NCBI RefSeq assembly: GCF_001194135.2
Contig: NC_068995.1
Span: forward strand, 9,044,359 to 9,078,575
Length of the DNA stretch: 34,217 bases
Direction: 5' to 3'
Source of the DNA: Octopus bimaculoides
Taxonomy: Eukaryota
Part shown: positions 12,399 through 22,344 of the stretch, in pieces
Numbering within the stretch: the stretch's first letter is position 1
Layout of the letters: each line of letters begins with the position of its first letter
Notes under the pieces: model-generated
Databases searched by the model: none
The model's input: only the letters and a program-made list of their open reading frames with translations
Told to the model about the DNA's origin: nothing
Translations under genes and position numbers: made by a program

Positions 12399-12692
12399 CA
12401 GTAGTAGTAGTAGTAGAAGTAGTAGTAGTAGTAGTAGCAGTAGTAGTAGTAGCAGGAGCAGTAGTAGTATTAGTAGTAGTAGTAGTAGCAGTAGTAGTAG
12501 TAGTAGTAGTGGTGGTGATGGTGGTAGTAGTAGTAGTCGTAGTAGCAGTAGTCGTGGTGGTGGTGGTGCTAGTAGTAGTAGGAGGAGGAAGAGTAGTTGC
12601 TGTTCATGATGGTGATGATGATGATGATGATGATGGTGATGATGACGATGATGATGACGATGGTGATGATGATGATGATGATGGTGATGATG
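12303..12692. repeat. 390 bp compound trinucleotide array (TAG/CAG, GGT, GAT)
   Basis: Read directly; source of the poly-V/D and poly-L/H pseudo-ORFs 12221..12700 and 12276..12779. Confidence 0.97.
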
Positions 12693-15211: not shown

Positions 15212-15732
15212 NNNNNNNNNNNNNNNNNNNNNNNNNNNNNNNNNNNNNNNNNNNNNNNNNNNNNNNNNNNNNNNNNNNNNNNNNNNNNNNNNNNNNNNNN
15301 NNNNNNNNNNNNNNNNNNNNNNNNNNNNNNNNNNNNNNNNNNNNNNNNNNNNNNNNNNNNNNNNNNNNNNNNNNNNNNNNNNNNNNNNNNNNNNNNNNNN
15401 NNNNNNNNNNNNNNNNNNNNNNNNNNNNNNNNNNNNNNNNNNNNNNNNNNNNNNNNNNNNNNNNNNNNNNNNNNNNNNNNNNNNNNNNNNNNNNNNNNNN
15501 NNNNNNNNNNNNNNNNNNNNNNNNNNNNNNNNNNNNNNNNNNNNNNNNNNNNNNNNNNNNNNNNNNNNNNNNNNNNNNNNNNNNNNNNNNNNNNNNNNNN
15601 NNNNNNNNNNNNNNNNNNNNNNNNNNNNNNNNNNNNNNNNNNNNNNNNNNNNNNNNNNNNNNNNNNNNNNNNNNNNNNNNNNNNNNNNNNNNNNNNNNNN
15701 NNNNNNNNNNNNNNNNNNNNNNNNNAGACGGG

Positions 15733-15817
15733 AAAATGTTGCCAAGAGGAGGTTACAGGATTTGAACCCGTACCGGTTTAGTGTTGTAGCCATTCAGCTA
15801 AACGGCACCCAGACAAC
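15733..15817 (-). ncRNA. Candidate Pol III small RNA, unit 1 (vault-like or tRNA-derived)
   Basis: TATAA 30 nt upstream (15847-15843). A box TAGCTGAATGG (15800-15790). B box GGTTCAAATCC (15768-15758) within an ACGGG/CCTGT T-arm-like hairpin. 5' GTTGTCTGGG pairs with 3' TCTTGGCAAC. TTTT terminator. Confidence 0.35.
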
Positions 15818-15990
15818 AAATAGCACCAAATTTAATGCTACGTTATAGGTCTGGAATGCGACTTTTTAGAAACAAAATTTGGAAGCGACGAATTCGGTGG
15901 GTATTTTGCTGAAAAAGAAGTAAATTTCGAATGCAGTAAACCCGTAACAAGAGCAGAGAATAATTGGGTATTTTACGTTTATAAGACAGC

Positions 15991-16140
15991 AAAAAAAAAA
16001 AAAAAAAAAATTCCCAGAATGTGGATAAGGGACTAGAACCTGTACCCTTCAAATAATTGCTGAGTACTCGGAAACGAGCCACTGAAAACCATTCTATCAA
16101 ATTTAATGTTGTATTATTGCTTTCGAATGCAACATCTTTT
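15991..16140 (-). pseudogene. Diverged third paralogue of the Pol III-type unit
   Basis: Minus strand GCATTCGAAAGCAATAATACAACATTAAATTTG...CGTTT aligns with the upstream flank of units 1 and 2. GGTACAGGTTCTAGTCC matches unit 1 GGTACGGGTTCAAATCC. Ends TGGGAA + T20. A box is degraded. Confidence 0.4.
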
Positions 16141-16312
16141 TCAGGTCTACAAGGGTAAATTGCCCAATCTTCCAATGCTCTGTTTGCAGTTTTACTGCGT
16201 TCAAAATTTACTTGTCCGCAAAATACCAATCATATTCGACGCTTCCAAAATTTCTTTATAAAGTGTTGTCGCATTCAAGAGCTATAATTTAATATTAAAT
16301 TCGGTGGTAATT

Positions 16313-16404
16313 GTTGTCTGGGTACCGTTTAGCTGAATGGTTACAGCACTAAGCCGGTACGGTGCGGGTTCGAGTCATCTAGCCGCCACCTGGCAACTTT
16401 TTTT
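16313..16404 (+). ncRNA. Candidate Pol III small RNA, unit 2 (vault-like or tRNA-derived)
   Basis: TATAA at 16283-16287 (-30). A box TAGCTGAATGG at 16330-16340. B box GGTTCGAGTC at 16367-16376. 5' GTTGTCTGG pairs with 3' CCTGGCAAC. T7 terminator at 16398-16404. Confidence 0.35.
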
Positions 16405-16845
16405 CCGTCATACACAAAACACACTCACACACGCATACATATATGCACATATGGTAAATGTCCTGTTCGCCTGTATACGAATAAGACTTATAAACTGACT
16501 GGATGGGCATTTTTAGAAGGTCTTTCAATATACGTCTGCTCACTCAAAGCCGATACAATACCAAACAGCAACAATATTATCCTGATCACTTAACTAACTA
16601 TATATGAAAATATTTAAAAGTGAAATAAGCGAATCAGTTATTTATATAATATTTAATTAATTCTATTCCTCGCAGCATATGTCAGTACATAGCAATCCTG
16701 GTTTTAACATAGTAGTGTGATCTCAGTGTCCAGATTAGATTAGGTATACACGAACTAGTGTCTCCTTTTAGACAGTAGACACAGAGAAATTAATCAAAAC
16801 CAGCGTTCTTATATTAATACATACAAATCTAATAAACTTACACTT

Positions 16846-16971
16846 GGTGACTTAAACATTTAAAGTTATACGAAATATCTTTGAGGAGTAATATCTCGGT
16901 TTATTAGAGGTTAGTAAATTCTGTAACTCATTATGAATTTTCTGCGAAACGTTCAAAATGGCTGAGTGGTT

Positions 16972-17008
<37 letters not shown>

Positions 17009-17347
17009 CAGATCTTTAACGTCGTTCGAAGGACGGTATGTATTCGCTGTGTTCGAAAACAACACATTTGATTATCACAGTGACTTCATCACTTTAAGTT
17101 ATATGGAATATCTTTGAGGGGAAATATCTTGGTTTATTAGAAGTCAGGAAATACGGTAACTCATTACGGATTTTCTACGGACTCCTTGTGACCTACCTCT
17201 AGATATTCGTATATACTTGCTGTGTTCAAAAAACAACATATTTAATTGTCATGGTAACTTCACCATTTAAAGTTACTAGAATAATTTTGAGAAATATCTC
17301 GGTATATTAGAAGTTAGTAATTTTGTAAATCATTGGGAATTTTCTGT
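16846..17347. repeat. Three diverged direct copies of a 100-135 bp unit
   Basis: AAGTTA, TTTGAG, AATATCT(C/T)GGT(T/A)TATTAGA(G/A)GT and ATTTTCT recur at about 16846-16946, 17046-17180 and 17219-17347. Confidence 0.85.
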
Positions 17348-17719: not shown

Positions 17720-18132
17720 AGTCGTCAGGTATGTATTTGTATGTGTAGATGTGTATGCGTGTGTATGTGTGTGTGTGTTTAATAACGTACCGGATATAGT
17801 ATGTCTGTACTTTTGTATGCAGTATAAATTAAGGAAATAGAAGCACTTGTANNNNNNNNNNGTACTTTTGTATGCAGTATAAATTAAGGAAATAGAAGCA
17901 CTTGTACAGAGAGACAAAGAATGTTATATTTTACCTGCCAACCTTGTAACTTCTGCGATAATTATTAATCGATAATGGAAGAGTAAATGTGTATTGTTTT
18001 AAAGGAAATGAAAATAAAATTTCGTACTGACACTTAACGCATGTCAGTCGTCAGGTATGCATGCGTAGATCTGTGAGTGTTTAATAACGTACCGTGATAA
18101 TATGTCTGTATTTTCGTATGCAGTGTAAATTA
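17720..18132. repeat. Diverged direct duplication (17720-17832 vs 18046-18132)
   Basis: GTCGTCAGGTATG, GTAGAT, GTGTTTAATAACGTACCG, TATGTCTGTA, GTATGCAGT and TAAATTAA are shared in the same order. Confidence 0.85.
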
Positions 18133-20873: not shown

Positions 20874-20950
20874 ATATTACTATTATTATTTGCGCATTTG
20901 AAATTATATCTTCGGCAAGTTAACTTGGGATTTATATATATATATATATA

Positions 20951-21610
20951 TTCTTTTATTCTTTTACGTGTTTCAGTTATCTGGCTGCGTCCATGCTGGA
21001 GCACCGATTTTAGTTGAGCAAATCGACGCCGGACATAGTCTTAATAAGCCTAGTACATATTCAATCGTTCTCTGTTTACGACCGGATAAGCTACAGGGAC
21101 GTAACCACGCCACCATCGGCTGTCAAACGATTGCTAAGTCGAGAACAAACACAGGCACGCAAGCATATATATATATATATATATATANNNNNNNNNNNNN
21201 NNNNNNNNNNNNNNNNNNNNNNNNNNNNNNNNNNNNNNNNNNNNNNNNNNNNNNNNNNNNNNNNNNNNNNNNNNNNNNNNNNNNNNNNNNNNNNNNNNNN
21301 NNNNNNNNNNNNNNNNNNNNNNNNNNNNNNNNNNNNNNNNNNNNNNNNNNNNNNNNNNNNNNNNNNNNNNNNNNNNNNNNNNNNNNNNNNNNNNNNNNNN
21401 NNNNNNNNNNNNNNNNNNNNNNNNNNNNNNNNNNNNNNCATACTTATATATATATACAACGGGCTTCTTGCAATTTCCGTCTACCAAATTTATTCACAAG
21501 GCTCTAGTCGGCCAGAGGCTATAGTAGGAGACATTTTCCCAAGGTGCCGCGCAGTGGGACTGAACCAGGAACCATGCGGTTGGGAAGCAGGCTTCTTATC
21601 ACACAGCCAT
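20951..21610 (-). mobile_element. tRNA-derived SINE, family A, copy 3 (full length, internal microsatellite spans a 251-N gap)
   Basis: Minus-strand head has A-box-like TGGCTGTGTGA and B-box-like GGTTCAGTCCC; body aligns with copies 1, 2 and 5. Confidence 0.92.
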
Positions 21611-22344
21611 TCATACTACTAAGCAATTCGCTTCTGTGTCCCAATGAGACTACAGGCCACTGACTAAAACAAGTATGCGAAAGATCAGAGATAATCGCAT
21701 CACGCTTCTTGGTTTGCATATTTCCTCTGATCCCCAATTAGTAGCAGACGATTTGATACAGCTGAATGGGTGAATCGTTGCCTACAAATCTTCGTGGCCA
21801 CCAGTTGAGGTTGCGCTCCACCTGAATAACATCTTAGGCAAGGGTTTCTACAACATTATGATCAGAGAAACAAAATCCTTTTCAGTGAGGTTTGGCAGAA
21901 GAAAATGGCGTTAAACAAGTCTGTCAAGTACAAATAAAAGCGACCGCAAAATGTACTTCAATTGCGGTGTGTAATTCGGTCAGAATAAAACTTCCGTATA
22001 ATTATATTTCATCTTTAAGAAGATCGCTGAACTAGTAGCAGATAAATGTATGTTACTCCATATAAACCACTGAAATCTAGAATTTTAAAATCCCTAAAGA
22101 AACACTGACCGCAATCCGATAACTGAAAAAGGAAATGCATCAAAATTATATCGCTATGTGACTAATTATTCCAATTGTGAAGAAGATAATTAACCCCAGG
22201 AGTATAAACTAATTATAAACTAACGGCAATGACTTTTTTTTTTTTACAAATAGAGTCGATCATAAAACCTGTCATCTCAGCACTATCCTGAAACATAACC
22301 TGAAATATATATATGTGAGTGTGTTTGTATATGTCTATCAATCA

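Follow-up and report, generated by a model that had tools for sequence, protein, structure and literature searches.

The window analyzed here, a 34,217-nucleotide (nt) stretch of the Octopus bimaculoides genome (NCBI RefSeq assembly GCF_001194135.2, contig NC_068995.1, positions 9,044,359 to 9,078,575; coordinates below are those of the window), contains within about 700 bases three related units, named U1, U2 and U3, with the anatomy of small genes that RNA polymerase III (Pol III) transcribes. Tentatively, we read them as a low-copy, lineage-specific cluster of Pol III transcription units derived from transfer RNA (tRNA). This reading is favored because the anatomy of the units goes beyond chance, the three copies share an upstream promoter region, predicted base pairs have changed on both sides, U3 keeps its boxes and stem, and no copy was found elsewhere in about 71 kb of octopus DNA, versus 12 copies of a repeat resembling a short interspersed element (SINE). 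An earlier note, made from the letters alone, had proposed a local cluster of paralogous Pol III-type units, related either to vault RNAs or to tRNAs lacking the anticodon arm; the cluster is borne out by the anatomy and by the co-duplicated upstream flanks. If transcribed and conserved, the units would represent a new lineage-specific cephalopod Pol III small RNA and a clear case of a tRNA gene remodelled into a different structured RNA, in animals whose non-coding RNA has hardly been catalogued beyond microRNAs.

Anatomy of the three units

U1 lies on the minus strand (15733-15817, read from 15817 to 15733), with a predicted transcript of about 85 nt that runs from GTTGTC to GGCAAC and is followed by an A and TTTT. 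U2 lies on the plus strand (16313-16404), with a predicted transcript of about 89-92 nt and a T7 end. The same A box, TAGCTGAATGG, occurs in both (15790-15800, minus strand, in U1; 16330-16340, plus strand, in U2). The B box reads GGTTCAAATCC in U1 (15758-15768, minus strand), where it sits within an intact T-arm-like hairpin, and GGTTCGAGTCA in U2 (16367-16377, plus strand), and 21 nt separate the two boxes in U1, 26 nt in U2. Upstream of each unit a TATAA element (15847 to 15843, minus strand, and 16283-16287, plus strand, respectively) has its first base exactly 30 nt ahead of the initial G in GTTGTC. Read from the sequence, the terminal stem comprises 9 pairs in U1, three of them G-U, and 8 pairs in U2, each with the same U-U mismatch; the T-run follows one base past the stem in U1 (T4) and immediately past it in U2 (T7). 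All of these features had been described for U1 and U2 in the earlier note, including the single stem mismatch, the short A-B spacing of 21-26 nt and a paired T arm kept in U1 alone (the T-stem of U2 is broken), and all were found where it had placed them.

Its count of two units was too low, since a diverged third copy, U3, is present on the minus strand (16011-16089, read from 16089 to 16011), beginning with GTTTTCAG and ending with CTGGGAA. The U3 B box is GGTTCTAGTCC (16040 to 16030, minus strand), its A box is degenerate, and an AATAA (16118 to 16114, minus strand) stands at -29. Directly after its terminal stem comes a run of 20 T (15991-16010, minus strand), a Pol III terminator probably lengthened by slippage. 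The stem itself, GUUUUCAG/CUGGGAA(U), retains 7 of 8 pairs, one of them altered on both sides. The three units are thus 79-92 nt long, and in the hand-drawn model with an 8-pair terminal stem that was used for the pair counts, 95.8% of the terminal-stem cells are paired over the three units.

Similarity among the copies extends well beyond their transcribed parts. The upstream spacers of U1 (about 177 nt, 15818-15994, minus strand) and U2 (about 176 nt, 16137-16312, plus strand, containing the TATAA) are homologous over about 176 nt at 75% identity, with a conserved block GTCGCATTC at about -45 in the U1 spacer; such homology had been noted before, with a length of only some 160 nt. U3 has a promoter-like upstream block (16090-16144, minus strand) with the motifs GTTGCATTC and ATTAAATT common to U1 and U2. 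In alignment this block is 69-73% identical to the other units, and its homology of about 50 nt ends near -52, at the start of the U2 arm described below.

An assembly gap of 514 N (15212-15725) begins only 7 bases from U1 and is bordered at its other end by a (TA)21 array; the 3' flank of U1 lies hidden in it, as would any additional units, so that the clean terminator end previously ascribed to the units can be judged for U2 and U3 and is masked for U1. At a spacing of 272 nt, the gap could conceal one or two further units.

When the A box, the B box and TTTT were sought jointly, the window matched only at the U1 and U2 sites, and 0 of 300 shuffles matched; a chance origin of the unit anatomy is therefore excluded. 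The window contains three B-box matches in its 34 kb, all of them within the cluster.

Duplication history

The segments 15727-15994 and 16137-16409 form inverted repeats of 78-80% identity (inverted self-alignment of 15727-16409, E = 2.6e-91), and the 142 nt between these two arms are occupied by U3 and its short promoter block. U3 and U1 stand head-to-tail on the minus strand with their starts 272 nt apart, and U2 is inverted. BLAST aligns U3 with U1 (16005-16138 vs 15733-15867) at 62.6% identity, and MAFFT aligns U3 across the unit and about 50 nt upstream. Because the units were copied along with their upstream flanks, these relationships point to duplication at the DNA level and not to independent SINE insertions. 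The shared 5' flank, together with a T-run right after the tRNA-like part and the lack of a body or A-tail, indicates that the copies arose by local duplication and inversion, not by retroposition.

Nor, judging from their divergence, are the copies an assembly artefact, since the arms differ at about one fifth of their positions, versus 100% identity in a duplication elsewhere in the window that is of this kind. There, an exact 45-nt duplication (17807-17851 and 17862-17906) flanks a 10-N gap and is almost certainly an artefact of scaffolding or gap closing.

Two other repeated features lie in or beside the cluster. Just downstream are three direct repeats of about 97 nt (16845-16944, 17080-17176 and 17252-17346), 82-84% identical to one another, in which no similarity to the units was found. 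On the plus strand at 16108-16142, overlapping the U3 promoter block on the opposite strand, the sequence GTTGTA...GCAACATCTTTTT resembles two unit ends with the interior deleted; it matches a covariance model of the units at 10.3 bits (E = 1.3), and we regard it as probably a chance match and not a further unit.

Signs of constraint

The transcribed parts of U1 and U2 are 85% identical, as compared with 75% for the flank (one-sided Fisher p = 0.04), and in the 5' half, the first 47 nt, 43 of 47 positions agree (p = 0.016). Between U3 and U1, 37 of 80 aligned unit positions (46%) are different, a figure that rises to 55% outside the stem and B box. U3 nonetheless retains 8 of 8 positions specified for the B box and 7 of the 8 pairs in its terminal stem, along with the T-run and a TATA-like element. 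Neutral decay simulated at 40-50% divergence left stem and B box jointly preserved in at most 0.1% of trials. The stem pair of U3 that has changed on both sides went from G-C to U-G. A second two-sided change, G12-C29 in U1 vs A12-U29 in U2, is suggestive of a 5' hairpin that would hold the A box.

Over the three-unit alignment 89.5% of cells are paired, vs 32-58% with slid partners. The predicted fold energies are -24.1 kcal/mol for U1 (z = -2.29) and -32 kcal/mol for U2 (z = -1.73), and a custom covariance model built from the three units scores them at 101.2 (U1), 97.2 (U2) and 86.5 (U3) bits. Collectively, these signs of constraint are suggestive and none is decisive.

Relationship to tRNA

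ARAGORN reports 0 tRNA genes and rejects all three units, and at Rfam gathering thresholds the window has no tRNA, Vault or Y RNA match. When the 774-nt region was searched at E <= 10, U1 aligned with the Rfam tRNA family (RF00005) at 16.3 bits, short of the gathering score of 29; in this alignment 6 nt stand in for the 17 of the model's anticodon region. This sub-threshold alignment was the sole relevant match from the Rfam comparison with Vault, tRNA and Y RNA that the earlier note had called for; U2 searched alone (108 nt) gave no Vault, Y RNA or tRNA match at E <= 10. Relaxed thresholds yielded dozens of "miRNA" matches in the window, all of the kind that microsatellites produce as artefacts.

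The A box occupies the place of tRNA positions 8-18, and U1 and U2 carry it in a TRGCNNAGTGG-like form; that of U3 is degenerate. A B box resembling GGTTCGANNCC is found in all three units, with at most one mismatch in the 8 specified positions. Read from the sequence, the D arm is perfect in U2 (GCTG-AATGGTTA-CAGC) and the T arm is intact in U1 (ACGGG-TTCAAAT-CCTGT). Between these elements, 10-15 nt take up the space where a tRNA would have 22 nt of anticodon arm plus variable loop. In the acceptor stem, which is broken, U1 has 4 of 7 pairs; the trailer and a leader of 10 nt build an extra terminal stem, and none of the units forms a cloverleaf with an anticodon arm that scores above threshold.

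The units are thus like tRNA genes, pseudogenes and lookalikes in their A box, their B box in a T-arm-like hairpin, their D- and T-arm remnants, T-run and clustering, and differ from tRNA genes in the absent anticodon arm, the broken acceptor stem, the leader-trailer pairing and the below-threshold score. The U1 alignment and the arm remnants lend weak support to the proposal, already present in the earlier note, that the units may derive from tRNAs by loss of the anticodon arm. Selenocysteine tRNA, suggested by the TATA element at -30, the length of about 90 nt and the long terminal stem, was considered and rejected from the sequence, as the units have neither an anticodon arm nor a long variable arm and leave 8 nt between T arm and stem.

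Proposed origin and expression of the units

As the sequence shows, an ancestral unit and its promoter were copied as DNA, giving the head-to-tail pair of U3 and U1 and the inverted copy U2. Expression would begin with TFIIIC on the B box, and on the A box as well in U1 and U2, and with TBP/TFIIIB on the TATA element at -30. Pol III would initiate on the first G of GTTGTC, some 17 nt upstream of the A box, and terminate in the T-run just past the terminal stem, yielding an RNA of about 80-90 nt with a La-binding UUU-OH end. In such an RNA the 10-nt leader and the trailer would form a panhandle clamping a tRNA remnant, which would itself consist of a 5' hairpin with the A box, a short linker replacing the anticodon arm, and a T-arm-like hairpin with the B box. 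With its acceptor stem broken and its ends paired, the RNA would not be expected to be processed by RNase P and RNase Z, and it would persist as a small structured RNA instead of maturing to a tRNA.

For its role we can offer only a guess by analogy, namely that it might be the scaffold of a small ribonucleoprotein (RNP) or a tRNA mimic, like vault RNA, Y RNA or BC1. The full extension of this idea, a class of stable Pol III RNA, specific to octopods or cephalopods and so far undescribed, that lost the anticodon arm, gained a leader-trailer clamp, is driven by a TATA and B box promoter, is maintained by selection as a multigene cluster and serves as RNP scaffold or tRNA mimic in a manner analogous to vault or Y RNA, appears to us doubtful on present evidence.

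Several observations weigh against the reading of the cluster as tRNA-derived transcription units. The retention tests on U3 were chosen post hoc, and the U3 alignment is uncertain outside the conserved blocks. The pairing values observed for the three units are reached by 31 of 500 shuffles, and three sequences have almost no covariation power; the fold z-scores are modest (-2.3, -1.7 and -0.75 for U1, U2 and U3). The A-B spacing in tRNA genes is about 31 nt or more, and a spacing as short as the 21-26 nt of the units is not known from tRNA genes. Both the T-stem of U2 and the A box of U3 are broken, and the T4 of U1 is a minimal terminator. The gap conceals the outer end of the U1 arm, where the repeat could extend past the units. 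Finally, the 71 kb that were searched leave room for hundreds to roughly 10^4 dispersed copies of the unit.

Is the cluster part of a repeat family?

This last point bears on the most serious alternative, that the units come from a moderately repetitive family, mobile or satellite, and that the cluster is one patch of it, duplicated or rearranged locally. Such a family might be a SINE derived from tRNA, or the source gene of one, a miniature inverted-repeat transposable element (MITE) or foldback element, or a tandem repeat of about 270 bp with a Pol III promoter. We consider this alternative unlikely, though clearly deserving of attention. The hallmark of SINEs is a tRNA-like head that carries an A and a B box, and octopus genomes are known to have several tRNA-derived SINE families, such as OR1 (cited in PMC4824008). 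The arms of the cluster make an inverted repeat of about 270 bp whose outer end is under the gap, and the 272-nt spacing from U3 to U1 would be compatible with a tandem array running into it. Retention of promoter elements in U3 would be expected of a transcription-dependent element as well.

Comparison with such elements reveals both likeness and difference. Like tRNA-derived SINEs and their source genes (the octopus OR/OK families, rodent BC1/ID), the units have a tRNA-derived head and an internal Pol III promoter. Source genes of the BC1 type need upstream TATA-like elements and yield a stable small RNA. The units differ from these SINEs in having a terminator directly after the head, where the T-run would halt Pol III, in lacking the body and the A-rich or long interspersed element (LINE)-derived tail that follow a SINE head without an internal terminator, and in sharing some 176 nt of 5' flank, unlike retroposed copies. 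A retroposon of the opposite strand was also considered, since the sense-orientation T20 after U3 is an A20 on the plus strand; it was rejected because an A-run is found in only one of the three copies, whereas a sense T-run is found in all three. No hammerhead or other ribozyme, such as occurs in Pol III-promoted tandem repeats, was matched with Rfam.

Copy number was assessed in about 30 kb of the window and in 40.7 kb of Octopus vulgaris, the latter made up of two 20-kb loci (L008 and L009) of GCA_951406725.2, the reference genome of that species (PMC10700109), which were reached through matches to a SINE-derived control. Outside the cluster, neither the three-unit covariance model nor BLAST found a copy of the unit in the window or in the Octopus vulgaris loci, so dispersed copies with unrelated flanks number 0 in this DNA, and the three copies of the cluster share their flanks. 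An abundant SINE-like family served as a comparison. It has five copies in the window (3581-3828; 10536-10964; 20946-21131 plus 21440-21612, split by a gap; 26401-26581; 29697-30100), which are 74-83% identical and contain an internal (AC)n/(AT)n microsatellite, and seven copies of 75-87% identity in L008 and L009. As the units have no copy outside the cluster where this family has 12, they are not among the very abundant repeats. Some of the Octopus vulgaris copies are annotated as small "proteins" (P0001, P0003).

Derivation of the units or their flanks from this SINE-like family was rejected, as no similarity was found between them and the alignment scores were at the level of shuffles; an apparent likeness in the 3' flank of U2 is a microsatellite. 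The other collections that were searched are, according to their controls, nearly blind to octopus DNA, so that the evidence on copy number comes from the 71 kb, which leaves room for the repeat explanation. The A-box region had 0 matches in a metagenome collection that contains no octopus DNA, where a SINE-pattern control gave only chance matches. A 128-residue open reading frame (ORF) spanning the cluster had no exact record and no homologue in a search that was nearly blind, the SINE control being likewise blank, and a 40-residue antisense translation of U1 had no homologue in a word-indexed search in which the SINE control was equally blank. In an exhaustive HMMER search with a chimeric query, the SINE control half matched the SINE-derived Octopus vulgaris "proteins", and the unit half matched by chance only, to a bacterial-type repeat protein. 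Unit sequence strings retrieved nothing relevant from a full-text literature search.

Are the units decaying tRNA pseudogenes?

The units might instead be dead tRNA pseudogenes that lost the anticodon arm, were duplicated locally with their flanks and are now decaying neutrally, with incidental transcription if any; their three B boxes would serve at most as DNA sites for TFIIIC. To this possibility we give less credence than to a repeat family, and it is distinctly doubtful. It would account for the sub-threshold tRNA alignment as sole Rfam similarity and for the 0 tRNA genes reported by ARAGORN, for the broken acceptor stem, the broken T-stem of U2 and the lost A box of U3, and for the about equal divergence of promoter and body in U3 (p = 0.19). 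tRNA genes are, moreover, commonly found in small local clusters in both orientations, as the units are. Unlike what is expected of neutral decay, however, the leader-trailer stem is preserved in all three copies, with one compensated change among them, the joint retention of B box and stem in U3 would be improbable, and U1 and U2 agree better in their transcribed 5' half than in the flank. Were either the repeat or the pseudogene explanation correct, the cluster would be ordinary, and would serve as a warning that an A box, a B box and a panhandle cannot alone establish a vault RNA.

Vault and Y RNAs

That the units are octopus vault RNA genes, with products that would join the vault particle by way of TEP1 and MVP, is very improbable. 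Vault RNA genes combine internal and upstream promoter elements, and vault RNAs resemble the units as Pol III panhandle RNAs of 80-150 nt encoded in small gene clusters; with lengths of 79-92 nt (85-92 nt in U1 and U2), A and B boxes, an upstream TATA, a panhandle and T4, T7 and T20 terminators, the units share this general form. The context of the vertebrate vault A box is TTTAGCTCAGCGGTTAC, which TTTAGCTGAATGGTTAC in the cluster matches at 14 of 17 positions. This likeness had been the basis of the vault proposal in the earlier note; it is present but reaches only about 6 nt past the generic A-box consensus. It is also the case that vault RNAs change fast outside their boxes (PMC8824774).

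Against this, no match to the Rfam Vault family (RF00006) was obtained for the window, the 774-nt region or U2 alone, whether at the gathering threshold or at E <= 10, and as this family already includes a mollusc, Lottia gigantea, besides an annelid (Helobdella robusta) and a flatworm (Macrostomum lignano; PMC8824774), the lack of a match leaves a vault-RNA identity unsupported by the sequence. A box A followed by TTACTTCG is conserved in these members and has served to find vault RNAs in lophotrochozoans (PMC8824774); at that position U2 reads TTACAGCA and U1 reads CTACAACA, so the extension is absent. The units differ further in the longer leader before box A, which begins at +18 and not at about +10, and in their D-arm and T-arm remnants, which suggest a recent tRNA origin over an ancient vault RNA lineage.

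Y RNAs are likewise small Pol III RNAs with an end-pairing stem and an upstream TATA, and their vertebrate genes are clustered and divergently oriented. The units differ from them in having no match to the Rfam family (RF00019) at E <= 10 in the 774-nt region or with U2 alone, and no Ro-binding stem motif was recognized in them. Vertebrate Y RNA genes are not known to carry internal A and B boxes.

Other features of the window

No convincing coding ORF was found in the window, which has 36% G+C, is rich in microsatellites and contains 11 runs of N. A second dispersed repeat family is represented at 24486-24700 and, inverted, at 5520-5685, and recurs in Octopus vulgaris (18081-18259 of L008; 10290-10678 and 14688-14953 of L009). 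Very long microsatellites occupy 12303-12692, 25287-25606 and 31968-32471, and include (TAG)93, runs of (AAT)/(GAT) and a (TCTC)n tract of about 500 nt.

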